Source: Penicillus capitatus (Eukaryota; Plantae; Chlorophyta). From it: 64,000 nucleotides of DNA. Under the pieces are notes generated by a model. The model saw nothing but the letters and a program-made list of their open reading frames with translations. It did no database searches and was not told the DNA's origin. The number at the start of each line of letters is the position of its first letter. Position 1 is the first letter of the stretch. The stretch spans positions 1,240,001-1,304,000 of the forward strand of contig OZ287700.1 of the NCBI GenBank assembly GCA_965649825.1. The letters are read 5' to 3'. Made by a program: the position numbers and the translations under genes. This document shows positions 3,866 through 55,629 of this stretch, in pieces.

Positions 3866-3870
3866 TGTAA
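3866..3870 (+). terminator. TGTAA chlorophyte-type polyadenylation signal
   Basis: TGTAA 35 nt downstream of the SF-assemblin stop codon. Confidence 0.45.
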
Positions 3871-3921
3871 AGGACCGCGAATCTGCAGAACAGTAACGCG
3901 AATCTCTGCGTGTCATTTGGG

Positions 3922-5560: not shown

Positions 5561-5577
5561 GATGCGAGTCTGTGGTC

Positions 5578-7417: not shown

Positions 7418-7524
7418 GAAGACGCAATCGGCGATGGACACAGAGAGCTCGGCCGATCAATGCCTTAATGACAGCCGACGTTTCATTTACTCGCATTTGG
7501 TCAAGCACTCCGTCACTTTCGCCA

Positions 7525-26717: not shown

Positions 26718-28007
26718 TTAGGGCTGCTCCAATACGTTCCAGTGTTCGTCATACCATTTGACCGTCCGCGGATCGTAGAAACACCGCGTCGATCCATCGT
26801 AATAGAGCCCGCGCGCTTCGCTATAGAAATATCCACTTTCAGCATGAAAGACAAATCCTTCGGGTGCTTGGTAGTCTGCAGGTCGATCTTTCCTCCGACT
26901 CACTTCTTTCACTTTCTGAAGCAGTTCGCTCTTCTCCACGACCTGACGGCAATCGACCTTTCTCTCCATTAAAAACCGTTTCAGCTCCGAAATCGGCCAT
27001 GAGGCAAAGTCCTCGTCATCTTGTGCCGGCACACCTTCCCGACTGCCGGACGGGACTTCTGTCCCTTTGACGTTGGATGTATCCGGTGGTGTCTGCATTT
27101 TCTCGATCTCTTCTTCCTGATCGCTGTCTTCCGCAAACATGTCCTCTGCCAAACAGGCACTTCCAATAGGTCCGTCTGCGACAGAGCCCTTTACTGGAAT
27201 CGGTATTCTGATCGGCAGTCTCTTTCTTTCCATAGCCCATGGTTTCGAGAGCGTGTTCGAATTCCTCTCTATACAGAGAGTAAGCATCCATCTCCCCGCT
27301 ATTCAGCAAGGCATCCGCCAACTCTGTCAATTCCCCAAAGGCTTTCATATCCGCTTTCTCTTGACCCTCTGTCGACACCATCCCCATCACCCATACTACA
27401 GACAGCAACTGTGTCATACCTGGCGTCTTCTTCTTTCCCAGACGTCTCAGTCCTGCCAACACTGTCTCTCTTGGCTTCAGAAAGGCGACGATATTTTTCT
27501 TCAATTCCAAGATTTGCGTCATGGATGGCTTCTCGATCTTTTCGGAGGCTGCCATCGCTTCTTGTTGCTCGGCATGTCGCCGAAGGACATCGATCGAACA
27601 GACCGTTGCTTCTGAACTCTGTAGCCAAGCATCGTCTGCTTCCGATTTTTCTTTTCTGTTCTCCACGTAGAATCCATCCTCTTCAAAGCTGCCAAACTGA
27701 CGTTCCTCGTCTAAATTGAATGGCTCCAACGGAACAGCTCCTTCTTCTGTCTCTTCGGCATGCAGCAGTTGTTCTTCGCCTCCTCGAACGTCTTCCAGCC
27801 ATTCTGTCTCTTCATTACCTACCAGACCGTCATCTCTGAGTACAGGCGAAGCGGAGATTGTCATGGCGTGCCTCTCGTATCGTGCTGTTTCGTGTGAATG
27901 TCGGGATCGGCATCGGACATAGATGCATCGTCCTCTGGTATGATTTCTGTCTCGCCGAATCGCACTTTCTTCTTTGTTCCGGTCTGGTCTCCTCTGTCGC
28001 GCTTCAT
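26718..28007 (-). CDS. CD2BP2: CD2BP2/Lin1 (U5-52K)-like splicing factor with C-terminal OCRE-like domain
   Basis: VPLEPFNLDEERQFGSFEEDGFYV, DAWL, LKPRETVLAGLRRLG, ELTELADALLNSGEMDAY. C-terminal GFVFHAESGYFYS..GLYYD...FYDP..KWY. Confidence 0.8.
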
Positions 28008-28022
28008 GTTCTCTTTCACGCT

Positions 28023-28030
28023 GATGTGAC
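28023..28030. promoter_or_regulatory. GATGTGAC motif in the CD2BP2/RSH-A bidirectional promoter
   Basis: Lies between divergent ATGs 28007 and 28098. Confidence 0.33.
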
Positions 28031-28097
28031 AGCTGCGGCACGTGTCTGGCGAAGTCTTCGTCAAGGTGACGTTAGATTTGGCAGCGTGGTTTGGTCG

Positions 28098-30710
28098 ATG
28101 CCCTGCAAAGCGTTACGCTATCTCGGTGGATCTCCAGGAAGAGCCTATGGCCTGTCTATCAAACGAAAACGCCTTCCAGTAAATCGCGGTTTGCTGCTGG
28201 ACACCTTCGTCGAACCGTCATCCATCGCTCATAGCACTCCTTCCCTTACCAGTGCTGTCGAAGGTGGCACGATAAACCAGCACTCGTCTGGCGCATTTCG
28301 TTTGTGGCATTCTAGTGGCAAGAGCGCATGGACTGGCGCACCATCCGACGCCTACGCATATTATCCAGTGGTGGGGGTGGAGACTGGGCATCGTCGGTAT
28401 TGGAGCTTTTCTGTACTACTTAGCATTCAACACCTTCGTACAGCATTTCAGATCAAAGCCCACAGAGGTCAGCGCAACAGCTGATCTCCTTCTTGAGTGA
28501 GCAGAGCGTCCGTATACAGGATGATGAGATCGAGCGCTGCGTGCTGCATGGCATTGACGTTTCGGACAGTCGCTTTTTGAGGCGACCAGCTGTCAAAAGG
28601 GCATTGGAATTTGCTGAGAAGGCACACGAAGGACAGAAACGCAAGACAGGAGAACCGTACATTGTCCACTGTATCCACACAGCTTTGATCATGGAGAATC
28701 TCATGGATCCTTCGCTTCCTGATGCCAAATGCGAAATGGCCGTCATCTGTGCGTTGCTGCACGATGTCCTCGAGGATACAACGATCTCCCATGAACATCT
28801 CCAAGAAGAATTCGATGTCTCCATCGCAACTGCCGTACTGGAGATATCGGAGATGAGTTCAATGATCCAGCTCTTAAGACGACATCGGCGCCAACATGTA
28901 TGCCCTTTGCACACCGTATTGGCCACTGAGTTCTCTTCTGGGATGTCAAATAGTCGGTGGACGATCGGGAGAGGTGGAGAGAAGATAACATGCTCAGAAG
29001 CGCCATTCTTAAGAGACTGGAAGATCCCATGATTCTGGCTATCAAGCTATCAGACCGATTGCACAACCTGCGAACGATCTATGCCTTGGAGCCCGAAAAA
29101 CAGAAGGCCATGGCACGAGAAACGCTGAACGTTTTCTGTAAACTGGCCGAACGCCTCGGCCTCTTTTCGCTCGAAGCAAGACTGTGCCATACTCTTCTGT
29201 CACGATGCGAGTGATCTTGCTTGTTCAGGCCGAGATGGAAGACTTGTGTTTTTGTATACTACAGCCACATGAATTCTGGGATGTGTACCAGCGCATCCAG
29301 CTTGTATGGAAGTCTGAGAAGATCAAACATCATCTGCACGACGCAAAGACAGGGATGGCATCAGAGAACACGGAGTCGGAAGGCGATCTCCCACAGAAAC
29401 ATGTCCGGGAACTGCTTCACTTGGTCACACCGTTCACGGCTGTGCGCTATCCTTTCGTGGCCTCCGGGACAAAGGCCGGTTTTGGTTGGCATTTTTTGCA
29501 GAGCTGTGCGAAGCGACTGTTGTACGAGATTGGGATGTTGTCGTTCAGTGCTGGTCTCCGTATCGACATTGTCGGCCGAGTGAAAAGCCTCTACAGTACT
29601 TACACAAAATCGAAGAAAAAGAACATTCCCATCGAAGAAGTCTACGACGTTTTGGCCCTCCGTGTGATTGTGACGGAAGGGGATCATCCGGAAGTGGCCA
29701 TAGGCGTGTGCTACAACATCCTCGATCTCGTTCGGCACCTATGGAAACACATTCCTCCGGAACTTGATGACTACATTGCCTTGCCAAAGCGATCTGGATA
29801 CCAGAGTCTACACATCACTGTCAAAGGCCCCGGCGATGTTCCATTCGAAGTGCAGATTCGCACGGCCTCGATGGACAAGAGCGCCGAGTACGGTCAAGCA
29901 GCACATTGGTGCTACAAGGAGTACGGCGCAATCGAAGCTGAAGAATCGACCTCCCTGTCCATCCGCGATGTGATCTGGGGCAAGAACGTTGCCATACTGG
30001 GACGTCCCGTTGTCCGGATTCGAGACGGCAGTTGGCGCGACGGTATCGTAATTGGAATAGAGAACGAAGGACTGGCCATCATCGTCGCCATCAACATCAC
30101 ACAACGTATATCGCGCTCCTATGGCTCATTCACCGTTGCGTTGTTGGAGTCTTATAAAGAGCTCTTGGAGTATGTGGAAACGCGAGGATGGACGGTTCCA
30201 GGGTGCGGCGATTTTCACGCCGTCGTGGAGCGCTATGTTCTTTGCTCAGATCATGCCTATCACCGCATCGACCACTATGGACTCAAGCACGCCACCGTCG
30301 TCCGTCCCATTCTCACATTCGATTCGCATCACTCCCTAGCTTCACATGTCGCTTCTCTGAGTGCGGGTACTCAAGGAAATGCGATTCCGTTGACGAAGGA
30401 GGATGAGGAATTGAAGCCGCGTATTACCCATTTGCGATCGATGCTCAAAGAGAACGAAAACAATCCCACGACGCCGACCGAGTTCTCGACCGTTCACGTT
30501 TTGATCTGGCCGGAAGGAAAGATCCGGAGCTTTCCTCGAGGGACAACGGCAGCCGATGTCATGGCATCGCGTTCGAAACACAATGGCCATGACGAGCACG
30601 ATCGCGATCCGATTCTGGTAAATGTCAACCGTAGCTGGGTCCCATCCGATACTCCATTGAGGAATGGCGATTCTCTGCATCTGCAAGACGAAGAAATGCA
30701 TTCTTCTTGA
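28098..30710 (+). CDS. RSH: RelA/SpoT homologue RSH-A (HD + intact synthetase + insertion + TGS), plastid-targeted
   Basis: GEPYIVH, LLHDVLEDT, KLSDRLHNLRT; GRVKSLYS, YDVLALRV, DDYIALPKRSGYQSLH, FEVQIRT, AEYGQAAHWCYKE; C-terminal TGS. GC-AG intron 29176-29228. Confidence 0.92.
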
Positions 30711-30741
30711 TGTGGCTTCAGCAGTGACGGCTGTCTCGACG

Positions 30742-33700
30742 ATGATGCGTTTCGCCTTGCTCTGTCTCTTGTCGATAGCTGTGCTTGATATCGGATTCCT
30801 TATCTCTCTGTTCCGGCAAACCTGTCCTTGCGAGACGACGTATATGTACAAGAGCTATCTTCACGCTTTGCAGCGCAAGGATCGGCGCTATCATCTCTAT
30901 CGCTATCACGAACGACGCATTCCCGGCGGACGTCGAGAGCCGAAGGGAGGCACCATGGCTGTCCTCTTTCTTCCAGGGAGTGCCGGAAACTATCAACAGG
31001 TTGTTGCCGTCGAAACGCCGCGATCTGTCTTCGACGTGTGAAGACACAGGCGAGTTCTTTGGCGGCGGAATCTGCTCGGGCGTTTCGGAGACGTTCCATG
31101 GATTGGTTGTTTGATCTGGAATGGTATTCCGTGGACTTCGGCGGAGAGTATTCCGCCTTCGAGGCCAAGATCATTGTCATCCTTTGATACCGTTTTGTGT
31201 GAGAAGGCAAGATGCTCACTCGTGTGTTAGGAAAATCAAGCAGCGTTTGGGATGGAATGTGTGAGATGGCTCCATCACAGCACAAACAGAGGCACGGTGA
31301 TATTGGTCGGACATTCCTTCGGCGGCATCGTCGCACGATTGATCGTCTCCGATCTCGAGCGAGAGAAAGGTGAAGTGTCCGAGGAGGATATGAAATGTGA
31401 GCGTCATTGTTTAGTCAGAGAGAGGGATGGTGAGTTTGGTGGTCACCCTTGCAGCGCCACATGCCGCACCGGTGCTCATGTTACAGCCGTCAATGGCATC
31501 TCTGTATGCCCAGCTGAATAATGTTCACACGTCGGTGCCCTTGCTCTCCATATCGGGCGGCAGAAAAGATTACCAGATATCTCCTCTGTTCACGCGCATC
31601 CCCGGTCTCTCTTTTCACCTCGTGATGAACCATCTCCTGAGTGACGTGTGTAGCATATGTGTCATTCCCTTCGGTGGATGTTGCGACGGCAGATGTGGCT
31701 GGTGTGTGGACATCCATCAGTCATCAACGCATCGTCGTCTGCAATCAGTTTGTCCAGCGATTGGTGCCCCTGCTTTTAGAATTTGCCAACACATGTGGAC
31801 TGGCTCCCGGGGCAGCGACACGTGCAGAGGTGCAGAGACTCGTGGACAAACATCTGACAGGCACAAGACCTGCGCATTTCAAAACGGGCAGGCAACAGTG
31901 GACGTGCCAACACCATGGAGAAGCCATCGACCTCCCGTTTGACGGTATTCTTCCTGGACCGAGATTGGAAATTGGCAGCAGGCATACCTTTCAAGTGAGT
32001 ACTGCGCAATCTGTTCTCCATTTCTGCTTCTGTGTCACCGCAGGATGCAAGCAACATTTGTTATCTGTGGAAACCGTCTTTGGATGGTATTGAAGAGGGA
32101 TGGATGCTGTTCATGGGTTTAACCCCGTGCAGCCATTTTCGCATATGGTCCGTCGATGCATCGGCGGGTGCTTTCTCGGTGACATCTTTGGAAGATCTCA
32201 CAGAACAGATTCAGATCGGACCTTATGCCGCGGAGAATCTGCAGCCACGTCCTGTTGCACGCAAGTAGGCGAATGATCCATGTCACATGTGCCTTCTAAA
32301 AAAAGTGCATTCAGTCATTCATTTGAGGTGATACAAGGCAGAGACTATCTCAGCAATGCCTCATGGATTTTTCACCTCCCTTCAGAGGAGCCCATAACGG
32401 CACCCGGCATCCTTCTCTGTGTCCGAAAGGCAGAGCACCACGATTTTCAGTTTGCCGTCGAGATGCAACGGAAGACGGCTCCACTGACGATAGCACTCGG
32501 ATTCTGGCATCTCTTCTGGCCTCACACAGTAGAGTATTGGCACAGGGATTCGGTTCAGCGAGAAAGACTGTATGTCGAAGTGGACATTGCTCATATTCCT
32601 GAATGGATCTGGCATATCGGCGTCTATGTGAAGTGGTCCATTAAATCTGTGGATGCAAACAGCAATACCTCAGCCATGCCGCATTGCTGGAATCCAGTAG
32701 AAATTCCTCCCCGAAACGACCGTTCACTATCCCTGACCCACAGATCCTACCTTATCCATCCAGAATGCAGCTACTTTGTCTTCCTGGATTTCAATGCTAT
32801 TGGCAAACTCTATGATGTGACGTGGTATTCCGGAGGACAGATCTTGGCTCTTGTGATGGTGTGGACATCTTTGTCGTCTCGGCATTCAGGCAAGCAGCAG
32901 ACATCTGTGATGCATTCCCTCTCCTGGAAATCCATTGCTATGGTGATGGTATGCAGCTTGACTCTCCTCAAGATAAAGGATTGGCAGCTGTGGCAGTCAT
33001 TGGGCATTTGGTTTCCAATGACGTCTCCATACATTCTTCTGGAGGTTCCGAGAACCACCTTCGTCGCCATCTGCTCCATGGGACTTGCAGATCTTCTGGT
33101 CATTCTGCTGGACCGTTTTTGGTTCCTTCCGAGCATCCGTAGCATGCAGAGTGTCTTTTCAAGATCTCACACTATCAGAAGATGGAGCGATCGATGCTTT
33201 CTGTTGTCATGCGCAGCCATGCTGCTGTTTTGTGTTTATCTCCATCCAGCCCTCATCTGTCTCTTCTCCATCGAAGGGCACTTAATCAGATATGCCATAC
33301 ACCGACGCCACGCAGCAGAAGAGCATGAACAAGGTCGGATTTCTTTCTGCTCTGCCTTCGCGGGAGGGAGTGTATGTGTGTGCGTAGCTTTGTGTCAAAG
33401 AGTGAGACTGGAATTTGCTGGAATGCTTATGGAAATGCCGAGCTTCTGCGCGTGGTGGCATCTTCCTCCTTTCTACCGTCAGCTCCATCTCCTCGACTAC
33501 GGCATCTCACTCTCTCTCCTTATCCCTCATCTTCTCACTCTTTTACGCATCGCAGCCTATTCAAATCGATCTCAGTTCTCTCCTCGGCGACGGCGGCGGC
33601 TCGAGTGGCTTAGAAAGACATTGACCTATCTCGCTCTTTTCTGCACTGTGGCAGGCTGGACACCATGTGCCCTTTATTTCTTCTGCGCCATTTCTTGGTT

Positions 33701-33746
33701 TCCTTTCACACCAGGACTGCACCAAGAGATCATAAAATCTCATTAA
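30742..33746 (+). CDS. PGAP1: GPI inositol-deacylase PGAP1/Bst1
   Basis: N-terminal TM, CETTYM, VLFLPGSAGNYQQ, YSVDFGGEYSAF, lipase box VGHSFGG, VTLAAPH, HQRIVVCNQ, multi-TM C-terminus. Confidence 0.88.
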
Positions 33747-33816
33747 TTCCATTTCGTATCATATTTGCCATCCGTGTCATGGTTCCGCGTCGTCGTGGAG
33801 CTCAAGTGCCGTTGCT

Positions 33817-36453
33817 ATGAGCGCTGTGTTCAAGATGCACATTGTCGGATGGCACAGTGTCGTTAGACCTGCCGATACGCGACGCATCGATTCGAATCTC
33901 CACGCCGGGCCACGTGGTGGACACCGAATCGTCGTTTAGGGTTTTGCCATCGATGCATGTGTCGTCCCTAGACTCGCAACCGCTCGGACGCAATGGACGA
34001 CGTTATCGACAAATCTCCTGCTCCATCAGCAGCGGCAGACTCACTCCATTCCCTATGCAATTCTCGCGACACTACGTACCAGCTCACACCGTTCTCCGAA
34101 GCTCTCGTTGTCACACCATTTGTGCAGGCGAAGCTGCATGGGGAGGCCGAGGCGAATGTCATCTTCATTTCACACACCGACTATGAAGTGAGGCCTTTGT
34201 CGATGACGGACGTGTCACTCTTTTTTTGTGTGAGACAGGTCTATGATCACATGAAAGCTGAGAGCGTGGATATCCATTTCCTCTGGCAGCGTTTGCAAGA
34301 CCAATTGGATCATCTGGATATCTACGGGCGGCGTCGAGTGGGTTCGGCCCTGATCCTGGCGTTCGATGCGCACAGCGGTCAGTTTCGCAAATCTGGAGAG
34401 CCTTTCATTACACACCCTGTTGAAGTGGCACGTATTCTGGGCGGTCTTCGTCTGGATGCAGATACCATTGTGGCAGGTCTGCTGCACGACACGGTCGAGG
34501 ACACCGATCGTATGTCGTTCGACGACATCGAAACGCGTTTTGGATCCGACGTCCGTCGAATCGTCGAAGGCGAGACACGATGGACCAAAATGATGCCGAT
34601 GCGTCCGGGAGATTCCGATAAGGATCTCGATTTTCGTCATTTCTTCACCAGCATTTCTAAAGACGTCCGCATCATTCTCGTCAAACTGGCCGATCGTCTA
34701 CACAACATGCGAACGATGAAGAGCATGAGATCGGAAAAACAGAAAGAGAAGGCGGCCGAGACGCTGCAGGTGTTTGCTCCGCTGGCAGGGGTGCTGGGAT
34801 TGGATCGCGTCAAGGAGGAAATGGAGGAGCTCTCGCTGCAGTATCTCGATCCGGAACGCTACACGCAACTCAAGGCGCATCTGAAGAGATTAGCAGAGGA
34901 ACAGAAGAACCCCTTGAGTGAGGCGCAGGAAAGCCTGCAAAGGCAGTTGGATGCAGATCCTGCCATCGCTTCCGCAGAGATCCGTGTGCGCATTGCGCCT
35001 CGGCAGAAATCGCTCTACAGTCTTTACCAACTGTGCGAGCAGTCGAAATGGAATTTTGAAAACAATCAGGAACTGCGGCATGTGGCTCAGTTGCATGTAT
35101 TGCTGGAGACTACGGCGTCCTTTGAAGAGGCAGCACGATTGTGTTACTATGTCATGGGAGTGGTGCATCTGCTGTGGAGTCCCATTCCTGGGAAGATCAA
35201 GGATTACATCTCCACGCCGAAGCTGTCATCATGGAGGGGACTGGCCACGACCGTCTGGCCATCGTCTGGACCCCGACTCATCACACCGGTCGATGTCCTG
35301 ATTCAGACATCGCAGATGAGCGTATGGAGTCTGACGGAATGGTCAACGTGGAATCTGAACGGATGGACGGATGACAGCGAAGGAATGACCGACCAGCGGG
35401 TCGACGATGATGACGGCGACGATATCATCGGTGTATTCAACGGCACTGAATTCGGTGCCTCTGTATCTCAAACGTATCAGAAGAACGGGAAGGCGTACGT
35501 GCGGAACGGCAGCGCCATGAATGGGACGTTATCGAATGGAGCGGAGCTGGATTCTACTTCAGTGCCGTCGGGGGATGCGCGTTGGGATGGACTGAGTCAA
35601 GCTCAGCTGCTGTGGGTGGAGAATCTTCAGAAGTGGCAGCAAGAGATCGGCACCGACATGTCTCCACGTGATTACGTTGATTGCGTTCGAGACGAATTTC
35701 TCTCTCCCTCTGTCTACGTTTTCACCCCTGCGGGTGAATTTATTCAACTCCCTAAAGTGCACACCATCTGACCCTTGGCAAGAGTGGGGGTGTATGGCGT
35801 GTTGTGTTTAGGGGTCTACTGTTTTGGATTTTGCTTATCACGTCCACTCAGATATCGGCAATCGAGCAGTCGGTGCCAAGGTGGACGGTGTGCGTGTGGG
35901 TCCAGGCTATGTGCTTAAGAACGCCCAGGTGGTCGAAATTCTTACCTCAACGATGTGGAAGATCTCGCAAGAATACCTTAATGCCTTGCGATGCAGAATA
36001 CCTGCGATTCAAACAACTTCGGCCAGAAAAAAGCTCAAGAAATTTCTCAAAGAGATCAGCAGACAGCTGGAGCCACGTATCACTCCTACCGCTCCCTGTC
36101 CTCTATGGTCATGATCTGTTTTAGGGCCGTCGAGAATGGAAGAAGTGATTTGGAAGGAGCAGTCGATGGCTGAATCTTCTTTTTGGGTGTTGGTTGAATG
36201 CGAAGACAAACAGGGAGTGCTTGCAGATATCACACGTGTGATTTCGGCAATGGGTTTGAATGTTTCGAAGCACTGGGGGCATCGCAGGGCTAAGGGTGAC
36301 TTTGTGATGAAATACGATATCCATGATCCAGGTGGGAAGAATGCCAAAGAGCTCAGTCGTGCCATAGAAGCTGTCGAAGGCTGTAGACAGGTGAAAATGG
36401 GCTGTACACTGCCAAACCTTGCTGCCGGGCCCCAATTCTGGCTCCGCCCATAA
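33817..36453 (+). CDS. RSH: RelA/SpoT homologue RSH-B (RSH1-like: HD + degenerate synthetase + TGS + ACT)
   Basis: GEPFITHPVEV, LLHDTVEDT, KLADRLHNMRT; TGS VYVFTP..GSTVLDFAYHVH; ACT VECEDKQGVLADIT. Synthetase motifs YQSLH and EVQIRT are replaced by WRGLA and DVLIQT. Confidence 0.92.
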
Positions 36454-36601: not shown

Positions 36602-37630
36602 TCAAGGACGTGGCGGCGGTTCGCTCGACCAATCATCAGCAGGTGGTCTGGATCCCGCTGGCGGCGGGGCAGATCCCCAGTCGTCTCTCGCCGCCGCCGG
36701 AGGACCACCAGGAGGCGGGGCAGATCCCCAGTCGTCTCTCGCGGCCGCCGGAGGACCACCAGGAGGCGGGGCAGATCCCCAGTCATCTCTCGCGGCCGCT
36801 GGAGGACCAGGCGGCGGCGCTGTATCTCCCCATCCCCCATCCGTCGGCTGAGCCGCATTCCATCCTCCAGATGTATCCACGAACGGTGCGCCGCCAGCGT
36901 CCTCCCATCCTTCGCCAGCAGCTGCATACGTTCCTCCGTGTGCTGTCACCGGAGCGTCCGTCACCCATGCCTCGGCTCCCGGAATCTGAGGCTGAATGGC
37001 GCCCTCTGCCTCCTCTTCTTTGATGTCTTCCGGCTCACGGAAGAAAAACAGATCGACCACGACATCCCACTTCTCACCATACGGCAACGTCCCGCGCATT
37101 TGCAGCACCATGCGTGCCAAAATGAAGTACAGCACGCCAATGGCATGTTTGCCCTTGTTGTTCGCCGGAATCGCAATATCGACGTACTTCACTGGAGAAT
37201 CGGTATCGCAGAAAGCGATCGTCGGAATATTAACATATGAAGCCTCTTTGATCGGCTGATGATCGGTACGCGGATCACATAGAAGCAGCAGACGTGGCTC
37301 TTCATAGTACTTCTGGATCTGATTTGTGAAGGTTCCTGGAGTATGACGTCCAGCTTGGTACTTTGTCCCTGTGTAATGCGCAAACTTGAGAACGGCGCGT
37401 TGGGCATAGGGACGTGCGGTCGCGACCATGACATCCTGTGGATCTTCAATCGCCACAATGATCCTCGCCGCCAACTGCAGTTTGTTCCACGTCTTCTCCA
37501 AGTTGAAGACATGGACGCCTTCTTGGTTGCGGCCAAAAACGTAGCGCTCCATCTGGAAATCGCAGTTCTTGGTGCCGAGATGGCACCCGGCTGCGAGCAT
37601 CATCTGAACATCGAGCTCTTTCTGATTCAT
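36602..37630 (-). CDS. RPSA: 40S ribosomal protein SA (uS2), intronless, with repeat-expanded C-terminus
   Basis: [58 protein letters not shown]. Confidence 0.97.
36663..36815. repeat. 51-bp coding tandem repeat x3 ([17 protein letters not shown]) in RPSA
   Basis: Units start at 36663, 36714 and 36765 and are near-identical. Confidence 0.9.
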
Positions 37631-37705: not shown

Positions 37706-39809
37706 ATGGAATACCTCCTGACAACATGGATGGCTGTCGTCGTCGCGGCATGTCTGGCGACATTGGTATGGCGAAGAGTATGTTCGTTATGGAAGAGGAT
37801 CGAAGAGGTAACAGACTCTGGAAAGGAGGGAAGGATACTCTATGGCTCCCAAACGGGAACCTGCCGTACATTGGCGGAGGCACTGCATCGGAAGGCCCAC
37901 ATGCAAGGATACTCCTTAGCCTTAACGAATCTAAAAGATTTCGAAGTGGAAGATCTGCCCAAAGAGCGTTTGGTGTTGCTCCTGATCTCGACCTATGAGA
38001 ACGGCGAACCTCCAGACGATGCCAAATGGTTCTGCAGGTGTGTGCTTTGGCTGGAGAGAAGTGTGAGAAAGTGTGATATTGAAGTTGGCTGGAAGATGCG
38101 GAGAAAGATTTCCGAATGGGGAAACAGCTGATGCAGGGTACATCGTTCTCCGTCTTTGGCTGCGGAAATCGTCTCTATGGATCTTCCTTCAACGTCGTCG
38201 GGCGCCACGTGAATGCTTCTCTCAAGAAACTCGGCGCCAAACGGATTGTCGAAATGCATGTGGGCGATGAGGACAAGGGAAACATCGAGAGGCAGTTCCT
38301 CAAATGGCGCAACAAAGCAAGCGGGCTTCTTGCTGTCACTATGGGTGTCCTGAATACCTCTTGCAGATTCTGAACCAGTTACCTTCACTGGGCAATCGAC
38401 TCCAAGACGACGATTGCGAAGAGGAGAATCTAGTGCCGCGTGAAGAGGTATGCGGGTACGGATGCTCTGGGAACGTGTGATGGCGAATGCATCAAGGTGG
38501 ATATTGAAGATTTGGTAGAGGCAGGCGGTAAAGAAGCTGCCGATTCTTCTCGACCGATGGATATGTTGACGCCTATGCTGCGAACATCGTTGACGAAACA
38601 GGGTTACAAGCTCATTGGCACACACAGTGGTGTCAAGATGTGCCGGTGCGGATCTCGAGGCATGGCCTTCTGCGATATCTTCTTGATCCAGATGGACGAA
38701 ATCGATGTTACGGGGACGCGGAGGATGCTACAAACATACATTCTATGGCATCGAATCGCATCGTTGTATGGAGATGACGCCTTCCTTGGCATGTGCCAAC
38801 AAATGTGTGTTCTGTTGGCGACATCATACGAATCCTGTTGGCAAAGAGTGGAAATGGAACATGGATTCCGCGACAGAGATCGTTGTGCAATCGATCCAGT
38901 CACATCGCAAAATGATCAAAGAGTTCAGCGGTGCGCCGGGAGTCAAGAAAGAGCGATTGGAGGAGGGATATCGAGTAGGGCACTTATGTATGGGGGTGAC
39001 AAGGAGTGAAAACGGAGTGGCTTAGATCAAACACTGTGCACTGTCGTTGGTGGGAGAGCCCATTATGTACCCAGAGATCAATGCACTGGTCGATGAGCTG
39101 CATGGCAGGGGTATGTCAACCTTTCTCGTGACAAACGCACAGTTTCCTGACAACATGCAAAGATTGAAGCCAGTGACGCAGCTCTACGTTTCGGTGGATG
39201 CTGCCACCAAGGCATCGTTGAAATCCATCGACCGGCCACTCTTCGGCGATTTCTGGGAGCGATTCCAGTCGTGTCTGACGCTTCTTCGTCAGAAACGGCA
39301 GCGAACGGTGTATCGGATGACCCTTGTGAAGGAATGGAATATGAAAGAGATGGCAGAATACGCCACACTCGTCAACCTGGGCGAACCAGACTTCGTGGAG
39401 ATCAAGGGTGCCACATACTGTGGAGAATCTTCTGCCAGTGGGCTCACCATGAAGAACATTCCTTATCACGCAGACATCTGTGCCTTTGCTCAGGCCCTCT
39501 GCTATCAAACCCAAGGTATCGATCGCTCTCAGTGCGCTGCAAAGAGAGGAGATCTGTTCAGGGGTGTATGGATTGGCATGCGAACACGCACATTCCTGTT
39601 GTGTTCTGTTGGCTCGAATCGATCGATTCTTCCGCGAGGGAAGATGGCATACCTGGATCGATTACGATCGGTTTTCTGAGCTCGTGCATCGTGGCGGCGC
39701 GTTCAGTTCGGAAGATTATCAGTGCGAGACGCCTGATTGGGCGATCTATGGCGCATCGCGTCAGGGATTTGACCCAGCCGAGCAACGATTCTATAAGTGC
39801 CGAAAATGA
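37706..39809 (+). CDS. TYW1: tRNA wybutosine-synthesis radical SAM enzyme TYW1 (flavodoxin + radical SAM)
   Basis: ILYGSQTGTC flavodoxin, GYKLIGTHSGVKMCR, SLACANKCVFCWRHH, LVGEPIMYP, TFLVTNAQFP, CEHAHSCCVL. Confidence 0.95.
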
Positions 39810-40027
39810 CAATCGTCTAAACAGAGACAGTTTTGTTGAGATGTCCTGGCCGAGTTTGAATTGCCTGTCCTATGAGCAGTGTCAGATGGTGATGTCCACT
39901 CAAGCTTGAATTAAATTCAATCATCCCCTTGAAAAGCTACAAAATCAGACCTGTCCAATGTACAGTCATCGTACTCCTACGTTCCTCCTCGCAGCAAACC
40001 ATCAAGTGCATTCGCACAGACGAAAAG

Positions 40028-41600
40028 TCAGTATGTCGCGTTTAAATGCGAAAAAAGAGAACTAAACTGTTGATCGTAGAATCCCCCATCCTTTACGTTT
40101 TTCTGCAGTTCCTTCATTGCGATAAAAATGTAGGCGGCAATGACAGCTCCTATGAGTGGTCCGCAAATAGGGATCCATGCATAATACCATTCTGAAGGTC
40201 CTTTGCCATCTATCGGCAAGATACAATGGGCAAATCTTGGTGCCAAGTCTCGTGCTGGATTCATAGCGACACCCATTCCACCGAGACACAGAACTAACAT
40301 CGCAATCAGAAGACCGATGTAAAGAGACATGATTCCATGGCGATAGACATCATCATATCCTTCATAAAGAAATTGAGCCCGTTCCTTAATGAAGAGAATC
40401 CCGATGACAAGAAAAAACGTGGAAATGACTTCGGTGATGAGATTGATCAGAGGAGAGTACGTGGCAGGGCGAGTACAGAAGATTGCCAGTTTCATATTCT
40501 GATCAGCTCTCTTGCTTGCCGAGACTAATAGATCTTCATCGACGTTGTCTTTTGGATGAGCTTCGTGCATTGCTTGAGGGTTTACTTGGTCGCTTGATTC
40601 GAGTGCCGGGGCAGTTTCGTAGTCAGCATCGGGGTCCATTACAGTCAAATTGTTGCGCAGTGGATCGCCCACTCTCGGATCGTCTGCACGTATGGAACGA
40701 TCGGTTGTTTGATCTTCTGGGACGCTCTCCAGCTCAGACATATCGCTGCTTCTCAGACGAGGCATCTGGACATAGATCTCTCCTTCGTCTGAAATGTTCG
40801 CATTGGCCGTCGCTGCAGCACAGAAACGTCACATCAAGATTTGGCAGGAGAGAAGGTTGACCGATGGGTCAGCAGAAAGGCAGCTAGCTACCTGATCGAG
40901 AGCGGACGGCCACGGTCCCGGGATCACTGCTGTGTTCCATGCGTTCGAGTCGATTGTGCAAATCGGCGATCGTCACGGAGCGGCGTCGATTTGGTCGGGC
41001 TCTCGACGCCTCGGGGCCCAGTACAGCTGACGTGTTGTACACCAGGCTTCCGTGTGGCGTCCTCCGAACCGTCCCGCTCAATCGCCGTCCGATCTGCCAC
41101 ACTCTATTCTGAATCGCACTTGGCAGCCGCGGGGTCACTGATGGCTGACGTGTATTGTATGAAACGAAGTCGAGACCACGTCGACCAATGTCGTCACGCG
41201 TGCGCAAAAGACGCTCGGCATCTTTCTGCGGAGGCGGCTCCGGTTCGGTTTTGAACTGGGGATAATAGAAAACAAACATGAGACACGCACCAACAAAGGC
41301 ACCGAACGTTTGACTGAGGGCGATGGGGGGCCAGTCGCTCAAAGATATATCTCCAACCAGAGCACTGCCGAGTGCCATTGCTGGGTTAAGAGCCGTGCTG
41401 ATATAACCGAGGAACTGAACTGGGATAAAAACGGCGAGGCCAACGCCGAAAGCCAACCATCCGTAGCTGACGTCATGGCCTTTCGTCTTTGGCAACAGCT
41501 TATTTGCCAAGAGCGCAAGAACAAAGAAGACAAACGTCATCGTAGCGAAGGCTTCCGAAATACATCGTGAAAGAAGGGAATAGTCGCCAGAATAACCCAT
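40028..41600 (-). CDS. GlpF/GIP-type aquaglyceroporin with very long loop C (2 exons)
   Basis: First box ISTALNPA; second half AIFCTRPA...MNPARDLAPRFAHCILPIDGKGPSEWYYAWIP. One intron near 40810-40890 joins the two ORFs in frame. Confidence 0.9.
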
Positions 41601-41750
41601 TCGGACGGAAGAGGTGCGAAACAGTCAGAAGTGGAGGTATAAGTAGTCTCAAGTCGATGCGACGTGAATTAAATTCCCGAGAAGAACGCCTTGCGGTGGA
41701 ACGGGTCCACGTCGGACAATCTGTGTACATGCTAGCTATATGGCAAGTCT

Positions 41751-41950
41751 GTGCGTTCGTTCGATCTCCTGTGTGCGTTCGTTCGATCTCCTTGTGCGTT
41801 CGTTCGATCTCCTGTGTGTGTGCGTTCGTTCGATCTCCTGTGTGTGTGCGTTCGTTCGATCTCCTTGTGTGCGTTCGTTCGATCTCCTTGTGTGCGTGCG
41901 TTCGTTCGCGTGTTTGTTTGTTCGTTTTTTTGTTTGTTCGTTCGTTCTCT
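41751..41950. repeat. Compound minisatellite: 6 full copies of GTGCGTTCGTTCGATCTCCT separated by variable (T/GT)n, then a degenerate TTCG/TTTG tail
   Basis: Copies at 41751-41770, 41771-41792, 41793-41813, 41814-41839, 41840-41865, 41866-41888; partial copy to ~41908. Confidence 0.95.
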
Positions 41951-42057
41951 GGCTTGAACGGCGTAGTATTGCTCGGCGTCTTTTTCATCGTCATCATCGT
42001 CATTGTCGACACCCTTCGCGTGCACGGAGCGCAGAGCCAAGCACAGTCGTCCACAAC

Positions 42058-43262
42058 ATGGCCGCAGATGGAACGTACTTCGTTGGGCGCAACGAGCTCT
42101 TGGCGTGGATTAACACAACCCTCTCCCTGAACTTGACGAAAATTGAGCAAGTCAACATTCAACACCTGTCTGAACGCCCCTTCACGGCGCCTGTGTAGAC
42201 GGCCAACGGTGCCGTCGCTTGTCAGCTAATGGACGTCCTTTACAACAACCACTTTCCGATGCAGAAGGTCTCGACATCTTCACACAAAACTCCACACACA
42301 TGACGGACTGCACCTGCAGATCGATTTCAATGCCAACAATGAATACATTATGATTAACAACTACAAAGTCCTCCAGGCCTTCTTCAACAAGAAGGGAATT
42401 GAGAAAGTCGCTTATTGCTCTGTGCTGCATGACGAGTCATGTGCTGTCGTTGATAGAGTATCGAAGTCAATAAACTGATCAAGGGACGACCGTTAGATAA
42501 TATGGAATTCATTCAGTGGTTGAAGGCCTTTTGGGATCGCGAAACAGGTGGAATGGAATTGGAAGAAGATTACGATCCTATGGAGAGACGTCAGATGTGC
42601 AAAACAGGAGACATCAAGGAAACGGGGACAGCCACTGCTGCTGCTGCTCCGAAGGCCACGACAACCACCGTCAAAAGGCCCGGGTCCTCCAAAATGCCAT
42701 CCTCCCAAGGGACAACGCGGACAACTCCCAAAAGCAGCTCTGGAGGGTGCAGAACGGTGCCCGAGATTGAAAAGTTGATGCGGGAATGGTGTGTAGGAAG
42801 AGTCATAGCATAGGTGGACCCAGTCCCGTTGCTCGTAATACCCGTACCCATACGCCCAAGTCTTATCGAACCAGTCGAGTGGACGCCGTCCAGGCAGATC
42901 AACAAGCTGAAGAGAGGATCAAGGATTTGACGGAACAGGTGCAATGCATAGGGGGCAGACAGATGTCGAGATGGGATGGTATGTGCTTGTAGCTGACGGA
43001 TATGCGGATGACAGCCGAAGAATCGGTTCGAGAACGCGAGTTCTACTATGGCAAGCTGAGAGAAATCGAAATTCTCTGTCAGACACCGACCATCTGCGAA
43101 GAGCCGATTATCAAAGTGATTGAGCAGATTCTGTATGCCCCGAACGAAGAGGAGGCACGAGCCATCGTTCAGAAATGTCAGATGGACTATGCTGGCAGTA
43201 TTTTTGCTGAAGCTGACGAAGTAGCCCAGACAATTGAAGAAGATGAAAATGGGAATCCTTAG
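42058..43262 (+). CDS. EB1: Microtubule end-binding protein EB1
   Basis: FVGRNELLAWIN, ANGAVACQLMD, NNYKVLQAFF, KGRPLDNMEFIQWLKAFWD, REREFYYGKLREIEILCQ. Confidence 0.95.
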
Positions 43263-43636
43263 CTGTCTCGCTGCTGTCAAGCACTGGATGCCTCCGCCCC
43301 TTCCATTGCAGAGTCAGAGATTGAAATCGTGCGCATCTATCTCATTCATGTCTAATAACGATAGCCCTCTTGGTGTGAGTGGATGGGCACTGTTTCTAGC
43401 TCCCCGCGGTGGAGTCGTCTGTCGAATTTAGAATATTGATTCTTTTCATTGGTCTCCAAGAATGAGTCAGTTGGTCCATTGACCTGGTTCATAGGCGATT
43501 CCAAAATGGGAGTTCAGTTTGATGATGCATTCCCTACACTTCCTGATGATTGTCAATGGCTCGATGACCCTTTCACAATGTGCAACAAGTGTAAAGCACT
43601 CAATAACAGACAGACAGATCGTTTGATGCAGTGTCT

Positions 43637-44374
43637 TCACAAATCGAAGTCGAGATGGGGCAAAAACACAACGCCTGTCTCTCGCAGCCGATAAAAGCAC
43701 TCCACACAGAATTCTGTTTCTTCATTGGATGACGGCGCCGCCGCCACTGTTCTCTGCGTTTGGCGGCGCAGTCGGCCATCGACATTGGCGATGGAGAGAA
43801 GGTCGATTGGGATGGGTTCGATGATGTGATCGAAGAGAGGACGGAGATTGGCGACCAGATCACGATCGACATCCGATGTGCACAGCGTCATAAAGCTGTT
43901 TGGCTGACCCAGTACCATCTGCCCAATATTCATGCAACATCGGCAAAAGCTCAGGAGCTGTTGGGGATAGGCATTCAGACAGAGAAGCGTGGAGATCGAG
44001 TCGATGATCAGCGTAAAGCTAGCGTCCTCCTTTTCTGTCGGCCAGGATTTGATAAGGCGCAGAATCTCATCGAAGAGGGCATCGAAACGGCAGGCATGGC
44101 TTGTTTCCAGGTCGACGTTGCAGACTGACGTCAGGAGGTCGAAAACGCGGAGCTGTTGGGAAGCTATGAGGCTGTGCACCGATACGCCGGTCTTTCTCAG
44201 AACGCGCGCGTAGTGCTCGATGTTCTGATCAACCGTCACGAACATACACCGTCTGCCTGATAGCAGATGCTCCTTCAACAGGTGCGAAATCAGGAACCGC
44301 GTTTCGTTCTGCAGCGTGCTTTGAATCAACACCGATCCCGGACATCTCGATAACGAAACGAAATCCACCGACAT
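43637..44374 (-). CDS. ELP6: Elongator complex subunit 6-like RecA-fold protein (intronless)
   Basis: SVLIQSTL...FLISHLL...MFVTVDQNIEHYARVLRKTGVSV...LIIDSISTLL...NVDGRL pattern typical of ELP6. Confidence 0.65.
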   Translation of the reverse strand: MSVDFVSLSRCPGSVLIQSTLQNETRFLISHLLKEHLLSGRRCMFVTVDQNIEHYARVLRKTGVSVHSLIASQQLRVFDLLTSVCNVDLETSHACRFDALFDEILRLIKSWPTEKEDASFTLIIDSISTLLCLNAYPQQLLSFCRCCMNIGQMVLGQPNSFMTLCTSDVDRDLVANLRPLFDHIIEPIPIDLLSIANVDGRLRRQTQRTVAAAPSSNEETEFCVECFYRLRETGVVFLPHLDFDL

Positions 44375-51949: not shown

Positions 51950-52107
51950 AGATTCTTAAACGGTTTCGACAACCGTTATGACCTCATCGGCAATCGACTC
52001 CGTAAGCCCACATGAACGAACGGCTTGGCGACGTCGATTCTTTGCCAGTTTGACGCGCGTTACGGCTTCCGTTGCACGTGCTTACGTTGCTGTGCTCTGC
52101 CAGTAAG

Positions 52108-53736
52108 ATGCAAGGACGCAGCGTTCGGCGTCGGTTGAATGGCCTTAACGCTCCAATGGTCGTCCTTCTCAGGGATGACGACGACTCGAAGCTTCTATCG
52201 AAGCAGAACGTTTTGCTGAAGAGCTTTCACCGACTAGGCATCTTCAACAGAATTGCCCCGATGCTGCGCCTTACCAGCACGCGATGGCGCACGGCAATTG
52301 ACAGTTCGACCACCAAGATGTCCCTCAAAACGGCGTCAAATTTCGACAACGATACGAGAGTCGACGCACTGACGAGGTTCTCTGCTCTCACCGACTTGAC
52401 GCTGGAGAAAGAATCTGCCGAGCCACAAACTGACAGTCTGGATGTCCTGCGAGGTCTTTCGCACCTGTCCAAATTGACGCTGCGGGGTCTTTCCGCTTAC
52501 GACGTGCCGTTTCTGATGACATCGACACTGAATCATCTGCCTCAGCTCACGACGTTAGATCTGGAGATACCGCCAGATGCTCTCTGGGATGGACTGCATT
52601 CGATATCCCACATTCTCGGATTACGAAGTCTGACGCTGCGCGTGTGCGGGGATTGCATGCCTTCTCTCTCGCCGAACGTATGGAGTCAGTATACCGATCT
52701 AACGGAACTCTCTTTACCGATCCGAGCAACGGGGGCGGCGCTGGGCTTGCCAGGTATTCTTTCTCTGGTGCAATTGAGTAGCTTGAGACTGAGTGTACCA
52801 CTGCTGAGGTCCGAGTTGGCCGATCTATCTGCATTACACAATCTCAGGTCACTCGTTTTATGCGGCTTGCCGTTTGAGGTAACAAATTACAATGAACTGT
52901 CACACATGACCCAACTGACCCGACTCGAATTGCCATTAATTTATAGACTCCTTCCACCTTTTCTCAAGAAATTTACTGAACTCAAATGCCTTTCGTTAAG
53001 TTGGGAGCTTTCATCGAAACCTGGGTTTCTCGTACCTGGTTTTTTACCGCAGACGTTAACATGCCTCACGCTTCATAATTTCGGTACTCCTATTCGTAAA
53101 GATATCATGGAGCCACTCACTGCCTTAAAGAAGTTAAGTCTGACTCAGCAAACGAATAGAGAAACGGGGGTAGGAGATCAAGCCGCTTTTCAGTCCTTAA
53201 ACGCTATTTTTGAGTTGTTCCTCAGTGTCAATGCTGTCGACTATCAACCATGCTTACCCTCCTTGCAACACATGCACTGCCTTAAATCACTCTTTCTCGA
53301 AACAACGGAAGAAATCGATTCGAACTATATCACAACACTTGCGAAGGAACTAAGACATCTAGAGCATTTGACAATTGGAACACTGAAGAACAGTGATGTG
53401 ACTGCTCTGATAAACATCCGATCGCTGAAGTCGTTAACACTTTTGCGCTGTGCCCAATTAGAACTGCGTTTGCTCTATAGTCTCGGAAGACTTGAACATT
53501 TGACAGACTTGTGTCTGTATGACTGCGGAATTGACCTTCTGTTGGAAGATCTTATGATCAACATCATGGAACACTTCAAATCGTTGGAGTACTTTGGATT
53601 CTCTCCTGTGCACACTTTACAGAAACACGGTTTACCAACATGGTACGAACATCGCAATCGGGTTGTCAAAATTGACGATAAATGCAAGCTACGTGTTTAC
53701 TTTGATGGTTCACTGGAGACCGTGACGTATCTCTGA
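52108..53736 (+). CDS. Intronless F-box-like/leucine-rich-repeat protein
   Basis: N-terminal LRLTSTRWRTAID followed by many LxxLxxLxL repeats. Single 1.6-kb ORF. Confidence 0.8.
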   Translation: MQGRSVRRRLNGLNAPMVVLLRDDDDSKLLSKQNVLLKSFHRLGIFNRIAPMLRLTSTRWRTAIDSSTTKMSLKTASNFDNDTRVDALTRFSALTDLTLEKESAEPQTDSLDVLRGLSHLSKLTLRGLSAYDVPFLMTSTLNHLPQLTTLDLEIPPDALWDGLHSISHILGLRSLTLRVCGDCMPSLSPNVWSQYTDLTELSLPIRATGAALGLPGILSLVQLSSLRLSVPLLRSELADLSALHNLRSLVLCGLPFEVTNYNELSHMTQLTRLELPLIYRLLPPFLKKFTELKCLSLSWELSSKPGFLVPGFLPQTLTCLTLHNFGTPIRKDIMEPLTALKKLSLTQQTNRETGVGDQAAFQSLNAIFELFLSVNAVDYQPCLPSLQHMHCLKSLFLETTEEIDSNYITTLAKELRHLEHLTIGTLKNSDVTALINIRSLKSLTLLRCAQLELRLLYSLGRLEHLTDLCLYDCGIDLLLEDLMINIMEHFKSLEYFGFSPVHTLQKHGLPTWYEHRNRVVKIDDKCKLRVYFDGSLETVTYL

Positions 53737-54410
53737 TGGTCGATTTCATTGTCGGGTGTCTATATCCCGACTGCATTTCTCTGCTGATTTCTTATCGCTA
53801 TCATAAACCTGCCACTCGCAATGTCACTATCATCCTGAACGGAGATCTACGGAGAGGAGATCACAAGTCGAGGAAACTATGCATTGGGATCAAGAGTGGT
53901 TGTTTGGTCTATGGAATGCAATGGGCGATCACCTTATGAGTGTCTTTGACAGAATGAGCTATTAGGATGTGGTTGAGCCGTGAGGCGTCCATGGGTATAC
54001 TCTATCTAATAAGACACTGATCTGTTCAGGAACTGCATCGTTTAACGTACGCATTTTGTGTAGCATCTCGATCGTGACGCGATCCCTGATGACTGACCTT
54101 CCTCGCTGTCTGAATTCTGTTCTATGCAAAGCAGATCTGCGTGCAACGCCTCTAGCAACGACAGAGGTTAAGAGCTTTCCTCCGTTTTCGGAAACACCAA
54201 TGATAGATATCACATCGATTATTGAAAGCACATGGATCGTTCAGAATGACTTTAATACAAAGAGATAATGATGTTTACGTACAAGTATGGAAGCTTGAAT
54301 GGGAAGAAGACTTCATTTGGAGGCCATCGTGTTTTGTAAGGTCTGCCTGCATGATCGATGATAAAGTCTTGTACCAGTTTCGCTTTTCAATCAATCACTG
54401 TCTGCGTTCG

Positions 54411-55230: not shown

Positions 55231-55629
55231 GCGGTTTTTACAGAACCGATACTTTTCGAGGAATCGCTGTTGACGTTCAACGACTGTTCAACTGACGCGC
55301 TGTTTGCGTCGCTTAGGTCTTTTGAGTCTTTTCCGAGGCGCAGACGCCGCGACGCGGAAGCTCCTCGGAAACTATGAGCCTAGTAACAGTTGTCCTCTAC
55401 GTCATCTGTCAATTGCGAATGTAAAGGGACCTCGAGGTTGTGGGCGACGCGAGTGTAAAACTGCTTCTCATATCTCGCAAAGGAAGATGGTCGGTCGATA
55501 CGCACGAGGAAGTTTCGCTGGGAATGTTCTTCTGTGCGCGATGGATGATTTTGCAACAAAACCTCTTCGTTTGTGCCAAACGACGAAGGATTGAGAGCAC
55601 ACACAACGCATTATTATCAAACGACTGAG

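Follow-up and report, generated by a model that had tools for sequence, protein, structure and literature searches.

Linked RSH3-type and RSH1 genes in a green algal nuclear locus and the distribution of the pair in two algal classes

Why should two genes of the RelA/SpoT homologue (RSH) superfamily, one for an enzyme with an intact synthetase site for the tetra- and pentaphosphates of guanosine, together (p)ppGpp, the other for an enzyme of the hydrolase type, be close neighbors in the nuclear genome of a green alga? The question is raised by a 64,000-nucleotide (nt) stretch of Penicillus capitatus DNA (contig OZ287700.1, positions 1,240,001 to 1,304,000), called the window below; all coordinates are positions in this window unless stated otherwise. 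On its plus strand RSH-A (28098-30710), a PGAP1-like gene and RSH-B (33953-36453) follow one another, as assigned by Pfam on pieces of open reading frames (ORFs) and on spliced proteins. An earlier note, made from the letters of this DNA, had described the RSH pair as co-oriented and 3.1 kb apart; the common strand stands, and 3.24 kb is the corrected distance between the stop of RSH-A and the start of RSH-B. The explanation that we favor, at a probability of roughly 0.55, is that the genes of a ppGpp maker and a ppGpp breaker are neighbors by ancient inheritance and that their linkage has been kept for a joint context. The enzymes belong to known families, and the conserved RSH3-type/RSH1 arrangement is apparently unreported: no mention of this genomic pairing was found in the RSH literature searched, the coverage of which was incomplete, so an earlier description is possible.

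Two RSH genes of different subfamilies

The loci compared with the window (numbered L001 onward) are stretches of 20-30 kb. One of them, L001, was used for the comparison of splice models and of dN/dS (the ratio of nonsynonymous to synonymous substitution rates), dS and identity by feature. The features of the two RSH genes are as follows.

28098-30710, plus strand: RSH-A gene, 799 amino acids (aa), splice model supported by conservation in L001
28384-28440, plus strand: RSH-A hydrophobic segment, aa 79-97, LGIVGIGAFLYYLAFNTFV, with a Kyte-Doolittle 19-residue maximum of 1.73
28601-29163, plus strand: RSH-A hydrolase domain HD_4, aa 134-302 (Pfam HD_4 7e-31; dN/dS 0.06)
29574-29924, plus strand: RSH-A synthetase domain RelA_SpoT, aa 422-538 (Pfam 2.6e-34; dN/dS 0.08)
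29997-30311, plus strand: RSH-A DUF7589 domain, aa 563-667 (Pfam PF24500, 3e-17)
30495-30680, plus strand: RSH-A C-terminal TGS-like beta-grasp, aa 729-790 (weak Pfam TGS match; Foldseek)
33953-36453, plus strand: RSH-B gene, by sequence an RSH1 orthologue, 764 aa, revised splice model in frame in the window and in L001
34347-34802, plus strand: RSH-B hydrolase domain HD_4 (Pfam HD_4 1.5e-39; motifs intact; dN/dS 0.05)
35001-35330, plus strand: RSH-B degenerate synthetase domain (Pfam RelA_SpoT 9.5e-10; dN/dS 0.01)
35712-35946, plus strand: RSH-B TGS domain, across intron 3 (Pfam TGS 2.3e-20 on the spliced protein)
36184-36393, plus strand: RSH-B ACT domain (Pfam ACT_4 4.3e-6)

RSH-A consists of five exons (28098-28263, 28316-28467, 28520-28897, 28954-29175 and 29229-30710) separated by introns that measure 52, 52, 56 and 53 nt; the fourth of them is GC-AG. 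Aligned to L001, the exons are free of gaps at 84-94% identity, and the introns show 67-77% identity and contain indels of lengths not divisible by three. Start codon and splice dinucleotides are the same in both. RSH-B also has five exons (33953-34075, 34128-34187, 34239-35756, 35812-36076 and 36125-36453), with introns of 52, 51, 55 and 48 nt; the first two measure 48 and 46 nt in L001, where the frame is kept. The start of RSH-B had been placed at ATG 33993. This start was ruled out by the comparison with L001, in which that frame contains 4-nt and 5-nt indels and a stop at codon 12, and the most likely start is ATG 33953, in another frame and followed by two additional short introns. We take the locus to be nuclear DNA of a eukaryotic green alga because it has spliceosomal GT-AG and GC-AG introns that are kept in L001; the alga is probably of Bryopsidales kinship. 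Its GC content of ~51% and its position as sister to Caulerpa may point to an Ostreobium-like bryopsidalean (O. quekettii has 52.4% GC; bioRxiv 10.1101/2020.07.21.211367). All eight introns of the two genes (28264-36124) fall within 48-56 nt, and such uniform ultra-short introns are distinctive for the genome. The GC-AG intron 4 of RSH-A is found in both the window and L001, and intron 2 of RSH-B in L001 likewise opens with GC.

Both proteins have the long-RSH architecture, HD_4 followed by RelA_SpoT in Pfam, and the matches in a PDB sequence search were Rel/SpoT structures. Catalytic motifs were read from a MAFFT alignment with Bacillus subtilis Rel, Nostoc Rel and plant and algal RSH proteins. 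RSH-A was said to keep all synthetase motifs, and every one that had been named was found in the alignment (GRVKS, YDVLALRVIV, ELDDYIALPKRSGYQSLH, EVQIRT and AAHWCYKE). The hydrolase motifs are also complete (AHEGQKRKTGEPYIVHC, LLHDVLEDT and KLSDRLHNLRT). Because all of these are intact too, RSH-A is not simply a synthetase, and by its motifs it is potentially bifunctional; the part of 'make' partner that it had been given agrees with the intact synthetase site, and the notion of a pure synthetase has to be given up. The ELDD within ELDDYIALPKRSGYQSLH (29790-29850) is an EXDD-type motif in place of RXKD. Motifs of the EXDD type (E[FL]DD or EDDD) are found across the RSH3-type subclade, whereas RSH1 and RSH2-type proteins have the K/R-x-K-D type. 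From work by Sajish et al. in 2007, EXDD is said to belong to monofunctional RelA-type synthetases and RXKD to bifunctional Rel, a charge reversal described in bacteria.

Outside the catalytic domains, RSH-A carries a hydrophobic segment that comes after a basic, Ser/Thr-rich N-terminus with few acidic residues and that suggests a membrane anchor. A similar segment is located 60-80 residues N-terminal to the HD domain in the RSH3-type proteins of Caulerpa, Bryopsis, rice (Os02g47120) and Chlamydomonas (XP_001689858), with 19-residue Kyte-Doolittle maxima of 1.5-2.3, and in the same comparison it is missing from RSH1 and from Arabidopsis RSH2 (AtRSH2). These predictions suggest that the RSH3-type (DUF7589) subclade may be membrane-anchored. 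Within its first 41 aa RSH-B has many Ser and Arg and a single acidic residue, and the N-termini of both proteins may be transit-peptide-like. At the other end of RSH-A, an AlphaFold model of the C-terminal 493 residues (mean pLDDT confidence 73.5) resembles structures of Rel and of small alarmone synthetases, and the final ~60 residues match the TGS structure 2kmm (Foldseek E 1.6e-4, TM score 0.65); the Pfam match to this TGS (E 0.0076) is weak and falls short of the cut-off. A Foldseek search with the same 493-residue model was uninformative on the fold of DUF7589, as the synthetase domain dominated the search.

For RSH-B it had been reported that the HD site, TGS and ACT are kept and that YQSLH, EVQIRT and the AAH motif are lost, and all of this was seen again in the alignment and in Pfam. 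The hydrolase motifs, aligned with Rel and RSH1 references, are intact (AHSGQFRKSGEPFITHP, LLHDTVEDT and KLADRLHNMRT). In the synthetase domain the critical Gly is replaced by Pro (APRQKS is aligned to SGRPKH of B. subtilis Rel, and Arabidopsis RSH1 has Ser there), the catalytic Asp of YD is changed to His, YQSLH to WRGLA and EVQIRT to DVLIQT, and AAHW.YKE is gone. Substitution of the Gly equivalent to RelSeq G240 has been tied to synthetase loss (PMC6881373). By sequence, the synthetase domain of RSH-B is judged to be catalytically dead. It is more eroded than in the RSH1 proteins of Arabidopsis, Coccomyxa and the metagenome contig L006, which retain YQSLH and EVQIRT; the additional loss of these two motifs is common to RSH-B and Caulerpa g5519 and is not found in other chlorophyte RSH1 proteins. 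An acidic insert of ~100 aa comes after the dead domain.

Purifying selection acts on both genes: at a dS of 0.32-0.36, dN/dS is 0.14 for RSH-A and 0.11 for RSH-B. The dead synthetase domain of RSH-B, with a dN/dS of 0.01, is the most constrained part of either gene. This extreme constraint suggests that the domain has retained a non-catalytic, possibly regulatory role, for example as an allosteric partner of the HD domain.

Reference RSH1, RSH2/3, RSH4 and bacterial Rel sequences were taken from the supplement of Avilan et al. 2019 (PMC6881373), and a neighbor-joining tree was built from 370 columns of the HD and synthetase (SYN) domains with 100 bootstraps. RSH-A groups with rice Os02g47120, Selaginella 52204 and Chlamydomonas XP_001689858 at 98% bootstrap, apart from AtRSH2/3 and the chlorophyte RSH2-type proteins, and inside that RSH3-type clade it pairs with Caulerpa g5518 at 100%. 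RSH-B is placed inside RSH1 at 76% (with Arabidopsis, rice, Marchantia, Klebsormidium and chlorophyte RSH1), beside Caulerpa g5519. Bacterial Rel sequences stand between the two clades, and AtCRSH, OsCRSH and CmRSH4 are on a separate branch. In a published maximum-likelihood tree the Os02g47120/XP_001689858 group is supported at 99.8/1/100 and is sister to the RSH2-type clade within RSH2/3 (PMC6881373).

The domain content agrees with this placement. DUF7589 (PF24500) is matched at 4e-73 in rice Os02g47120 and at 3e-17 in RSH-A, and Pfam gave no match to it in AtRSH2 or in the Chlamydomonas RSH2-type protein XP_001697429. The close homologues of RSH-A are all algal and all contain DUF7589; a protein-database search with the DUF7589 and C-terminal part of RSH-A alone returned two matches, none of them a named plant protein. 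The best named matches of RSH-B are RSH1 of Tetraselmis, Coccomyxa, bryophytes and seed plants, at 36-45% identity. Neither window protein belongs to RSH4/CRSH, a group marked by a degraded hydrolase domain, an intact synthetase and, in most cases, EF hands at the C-terminus, as the HD motifs are intact in both and Pfam found no EF-hand match. True RSH3 is missing from Arabidopsis, and the RSH3s of this kind have only a terminal TGS fragment (review PMC5633626). RSH-A has the traits of true RSH3: HD and synthetase motifs intact, ACT absent, DUF7589 present and only a TGS fragment at the C-terminus. On the tree and domain evidence we conclude that RSH-A is a member of the 'true RSH3' (Os02g47120/DUF7589) subclade of RSH2/3 rather than a generic RSH2/3, and that RSH-B is an RSH1 orthologue.

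The true RSH3 proteins of rice (Os02g47120), Marchantia (Mapoly0035s0150), Chlamydomonas (XP_001689858) and Ostreococcus (XP_001420831) share with RSH-A the DUF7589 domain, the terminal TGS fragment and the N-terminal hydrophobic segment, as well as E[FL]DDYI..PK.SGYQSLH and the replacement of HP by HC after the first His. We know of no member of this subclade that has been assayed so far. Arabidopsis RSH2/RSH3, which are held to be the main ppGpp synthetases there (PMC6881373), are in the same wider family and also have intact HD and SYN motifs and no ACT; unlike RSH-A they have no DUF7589 and no N-terminal hydrophobic anchor, carry a KLKD (RXKD-like) motif and form a separate subclade. Plant and green algal RSH1 (Arabidopsis NP_001329795, Coccomyxa XP_005643557), which is held to be the main plastid ppGpp hydrolase (PMC6881373, PMC5633626), resembles RSH-B in the order HD, degenerate SYN, TGS and ACT, with the HD site intact and the critical Gly substituted. 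RSH-B differs from these two RSH1 proteins in a far more eroded synthetase domain, in the ~100-aa acidic insert and in the pairing of its gene with an RSH3-type gene.

Conservation of the RSH3-type/RSH1 linkage

Two loci of an ENA metagenome assembly (ERZ26696514; L001 and L002) contain RSH-A, PGAP1 and RSH-B followed by uS2 on the opposite strand, with proteins 89-92% identical to those of the window. The same four-gene order is present at ~60% protein identity in L003 (Logan SRR33785046), where the flanks are rearranged. The block of TYW1, aquaporin, EB1 and ELP6, which is located downstream of uS2 in the window (37825-44335), is inverted in L003 (its positions 3254-9362) and lies upstream of RSH-A, so the rearrangement breakpoints fall at the edges of the four-gene block. 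In Caulerpa lentillifera the orthologues are the consecutive gene models g5518 and g5519, which are probably adjacent.

The pair was also found in a second class. In Nannochloris sp. 'desiccata' (Trebouxiophyceae; L010) RSH1 lies 1.8 kb downstream of an RSH3-type gene that carries DUF7589; the two are co-stranded, and a single small gene on the minus strand separates them. Three metagenome contigs (L006, L013 and L014), the RSH genes of which are Nannochloris-like, have RSH3-type then RSH1 on the same strand with spacers of 0.7-1.2 kb, and in [Myrmecia] bisecta (L012) the RSH3-type and RSH1 genes are head-to-head and 1.3 kb apart. When the whole window was compared with these loci by tblastx, the two RSH genes were the only ones shared across classes. 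A related arrangement is seen in Coccomyxa subellipsoidea (L007; AGSI01000020.1, 1-14188), in which an RSH2-type gene (XP_005643555) is two genes from RSH1 (XP_005643557), divergently oriented and with an Abhydrolase_1 gene between. The earlier note had stated that absence of the linkage in all relatives would speak against its idea; the pair is in fact adjacent in several lineages of two green algal classes.

For two given genes the chance of being <=5 kb apart is ~1e-4 per genome (for a genome of 20-150 Mb). Because chance juxtaposition is this rare, we consider the adjacency to be inherited and repeatedly lost; most probably it was already present in an ancestor common to at least Ulvophyceae and Trebouxiophyceae. 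Adjacency has been kept across deep divergence while the other neighbors turned over, as is looked for in a selected pair, although exceptions exist. It has outlived the loss of all other shared neighbors, a head-to-head flip and the insertion of unrelated genes such as PGAP1. As separate observations, the Nannochloris pair is flanked by Abhydrolase_1 and GDP-mannose-dehydratase-type epimerase genes, and in Marchantia polymorpha the identifiers of an RSH2-type gene (Mapoly0053s0013) and of RSH1 (Mapoly0053s0023) are ten apart on one scaffold, a tentative hint of loose RSH2/3-RSH1 linkage in a land plant as well (PMC6881373 supplement).

The gene between the two RSH genes in the window is the following.

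30742-33746, plus strand: PGAP1-like gene (glycosylphosphatidylinositol, GPI, inositol-deacylase type) for an alpha/beta-hydrolase membrane protein, with several short introns (Pfam PGAP1 on ORF pieces)

The RSH genes had been described as clustered around PGAP1. This part of the description fails, as close relatives of the window are the only ones in which PGAP1 separates the two RSH genes: no PGAP1 homologue was found in the loci of other classes by tblastn with the 799-aa L003 orthologue or by tblastx of the window, and it is present only in L001-L003. By these searches PGAP1 is a lineage-specific insert outside the core pair. Its start is ~31 nt past the RSH-A stop, or, if ATG 30664 is used instead, the two genes overlap by 47 nt (30664-30760). 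The spacing is likewise tiny in L001 (11439-11540) and in L003 (12109-12130, ~19 nt). With a gap of ~31 nt or an overlap, there is no space for a separate PGAP1 promoter outside the RSH-A coding sequence. Alpha/beta-hydrolase genes are also present beside RSH genes in Coccomyxa, Trebouxia and Nannochloris, the Trebouxia case (L005) being an Abhydrolase_1 gene that adjoins the RSH3-type gene; homology of PGAP1 to these genes was unsupported by tblastn and tblastx.

Possible reasons for the linkage

Each RSH gene is preceded by a strongly conserved 5' flank.

27868-28097, no strand assigned: RSH-A 5' flank, shared divergently with a minus-strand OCRE-domain gene (93.5% identity to L001, no gaps)
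33747-33952, no strand assigned: RSH-B 5' flank, 206 nt, the most conserved segment of the block (95.6% identity to L001)

Both flanks exceed the identity of exons (84-95%) and of introns (67-83%) and the expectation from dS for neutral sites. As their conservation is above that of introns and above the dS expectation, each RSH gene seemingly has its own constrained upstream region, and the two flanks are likely the promoter and 5' untranslated region of RSH-A and of RSH-B, respectively. A CACGTG hexamer is located at 28039 and at 33911, 42-59 nt upstream of the ATGs, and is present in L001. No unusual RNA structure was detected in the 5' flanks (z = -1.6 for the RSH-B flank and -0.06 for the other).

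In the explanation that we favor, RSH-A would be a plastid (p)ppGpp producer, possibly bifunctional, perhaps membrane-bound and RelA-like in substrate use, and RSH-B would be a (p)ppGpp hydrolase in which the dead domain is kept to serve the HD domain as a partner, in regulation or in structure. The genes would be transcribed separately, each from its own conserved 5' flank, and the linkage would keep the two antagonists in a common context of chromatin, copy number or expression. Such a shared context could buffer the synthetase/hydrolase ratio, which would set plastid ppGpp. That the linkage serves a function is plausible, though unproven. There is a parallel in Escherichia coli RelA/SpoT, also a synthetase-dominant EXDD enzyme and a hydrolase-dominant partner, one of which has a dead copy of the catalytic domain of the other. 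In E. coli, however, it is the hydrolase domain of RelA that is dead, whereas in the window the hydrolase partner carries a dead synthetase; relA and spoT are no neighbors in E. coli, and the algal genes are nuclear with products that are presumably plastid-targeted. A wider version of the proposal, in which a 'make/break' unit of RSH1 and an RSH2/3-family synthetase gene dates to the ancestor of core Chlorophyta or even of Viridiplantae and has been held together by selection, seems doubtful to us; the older date is supported by the Coccomyxa RSH2-type gene two genes from RSH1 and by the Marchantia RSH2 and RSH1 identifiers that are ten apart.

Several observations weigh against a linkage kept for a joint context. 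RSH1 is absent within 10 kb of the RSH3-type gene in Bryopsis (L004) and Trebouxia (L005) and within 10 kb in ~12 more distant (picoplankton-like) RSH3-type metagenome contigs with long flanks, and the RSH1 genes of a pedinophyte, Parachlorella and Monoraphidium are without an RSH neighbor. The adjacency in Caulerpa was inferred from gene numbering alone. The two 5' flanks share no k-mer longer than 8, which is also the most frequent value in 500 shuffles and thus at chance level; CACGTG was found post hoc, is not kept in L003 and is inconsistent elsewhere, which makes it a weak lead. The co-regulated module suggested in the earlier note is no more than a possibility. The neighbor-joining tree is the product of a simple distance method. 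Finally, RSH-A may also hydrolyze ppGpp, as its motifs allow, and this would blur the 'make/break' split.

The most serious competitor holds that the two genes became neighbors by chance in an early core chlorophyte, that in some compact genomes a short spacer has not yet been broken and that the linkage is meaningless. We regard this as quite possible, at somewhat below even odds. It fits the loss of the pair in several lineages with no obvious consequence, the lack of a common cis motif in the 5' flanks, the separate conserved flank of each gene and the entry of the unrelated PGAP1 between them, and the spacers are short (0.7-3.2 kb), so breakpoints in them are less probable. What it leaves to coincidence is that the sole surviving pair should consist of two antagonistic enzymes of one pathway: apart from the RSH genes, no gene of the window has a homologue in the loci of Nannochloris, Myrmecia and the metagenome contigs, the adjacency of the pair outlasted a change of orientation in Myrmecia, and the L003 breakpoints flank the block. 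Independent joining of RSH3-type and RSH1 genes in separate lineages would explain why orientation and intervening genes vary by lineage and why Coccomyxa has a different paralogue, of the RSH2 type, two genes from RSH1; it is highly improbable, since, at ~1e-4 per genome, a single ancestral adjacency with later local inversions and insertions is a far more parsimonious account than three or more independent joinings.

Two further explanations concern the window itself. The three genes are co-stranded and the RSH-A stop is within a few tens of nt of the PGAP1 start, as in L003, or beyond it, which would be compatible with one polycistronic mRNA for RSH-A, PGAP1 and RSH-B. Chlorophyte collinear, polycistronic gene pairs (PMC7896298) are likewise adjacent same-strand ORFs that have been conserved over hundreds of millions of years; they are, however, small, tightly spaced and carried on one mRNA, whereas the RSH ORFs are 2.3-2.4 kb long, have their own conserved flanks and are divergent in one lineage. 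An upstream ORF of 2.4 kb is at odds with that pattern, RSH-B has its own 206-nt flank, a minus-strand gene lies between the pair in Nannochloris, and the divergent pair of Myrmecia rules out co-transcription there; we therefore consider an operon-like transcript very unlikely. That one RSH gene is a recent, degenerating tandem copy of the other is next to impossible, even though the genes share orientation and superfamily and the RSH-B synthetase is degenerate. RSH-A and RSH-B are only 25-33% identical, RSH-B is nearer to land-plant RSH1 (36-45%) and RSH-A to rice Os02g47120, bacterial Rel sequences stand between their clades, the architectures are unlike (DUF7589 against TGS plus ACT), and RSH-B is strongly constrained, the dead domain included. 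The earlier note had judged the genes to be of different RSH subfamilies rather than a recent tandem duplicate and had proposed a phylogeny as the check; the tree, with its separate clades (98% and 76%), supports that judgment, and on the tree and identity values the two are ancient paralogues.

In plants and algae, the capacity for photosynthesis and the acclimation to stress are set by plastid (p)ppGpp, and the balance of its synthesis and breakdown is poorly understood beyond Arabidopsis. A deeply conserved pairing of the predicted main synthetase-type gene with RSH1 would give a testable handle on this balance, through chromatin domain, dosage coupling or co-expression. If the wider version of the proposal is true, the locus would be a rare deeply conserved pair of functionally antagonistic enzyme genes in eukaryotic nuclear genomes, with the enzyme ratio buffered against copy-number, chromatin or segregation effects; if the linkage is neutral, these are two ordinary RSH genes in a compact genome. 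The locus also draws attention to the unstudied DUF7589 'true RSH3', which is missing from Arabidopsis, apparently membrane-anchored and RelA-like in its EXDD motif.

The surrounding genes

The genes of the window, which has a GC content of ~0.51, are densely packed and broken by very short spliceosomal introns. The neighbors are of the housekeeping kind: an ATG1-like kinase, a UbiE/COQ5 methyltransferase, 6-phosphogluconate dehydrogenase, a papain-type protease, an AAA ATPase, the OCRE-domain gene on the minus strand, cytosolic ribosomal protein uS2, a TYW1-like gene, an aquaporin and ELP6. A comparison of the whole window with Rfam matched 0 families. One neighbor closes the four-gene block.

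36602-37630, minus strand: uS2/RPSA gene, cytosolic (ORF; Pfam Ribosomal_S2 on the L001 and L003 orthologues)

This gene converges on RSH-B and forms the right end of the four-gene block that is intact in L003. The C-terminus of the uS2/RPSA protein (36602-36930, minus strand) contains three tandem copies of a 17-aa Pro/Gly/Ala-rich unit. Further to the right, in the region 52072-63000, three long ORFs are without a Pfam match (52072-53736 on the plus strand, 56364-57938 on the minus strand and 58524-59354 on the plus strand), and the GC content at 58-63 kb, 0.56-0.62, differs from that of the remaining window.

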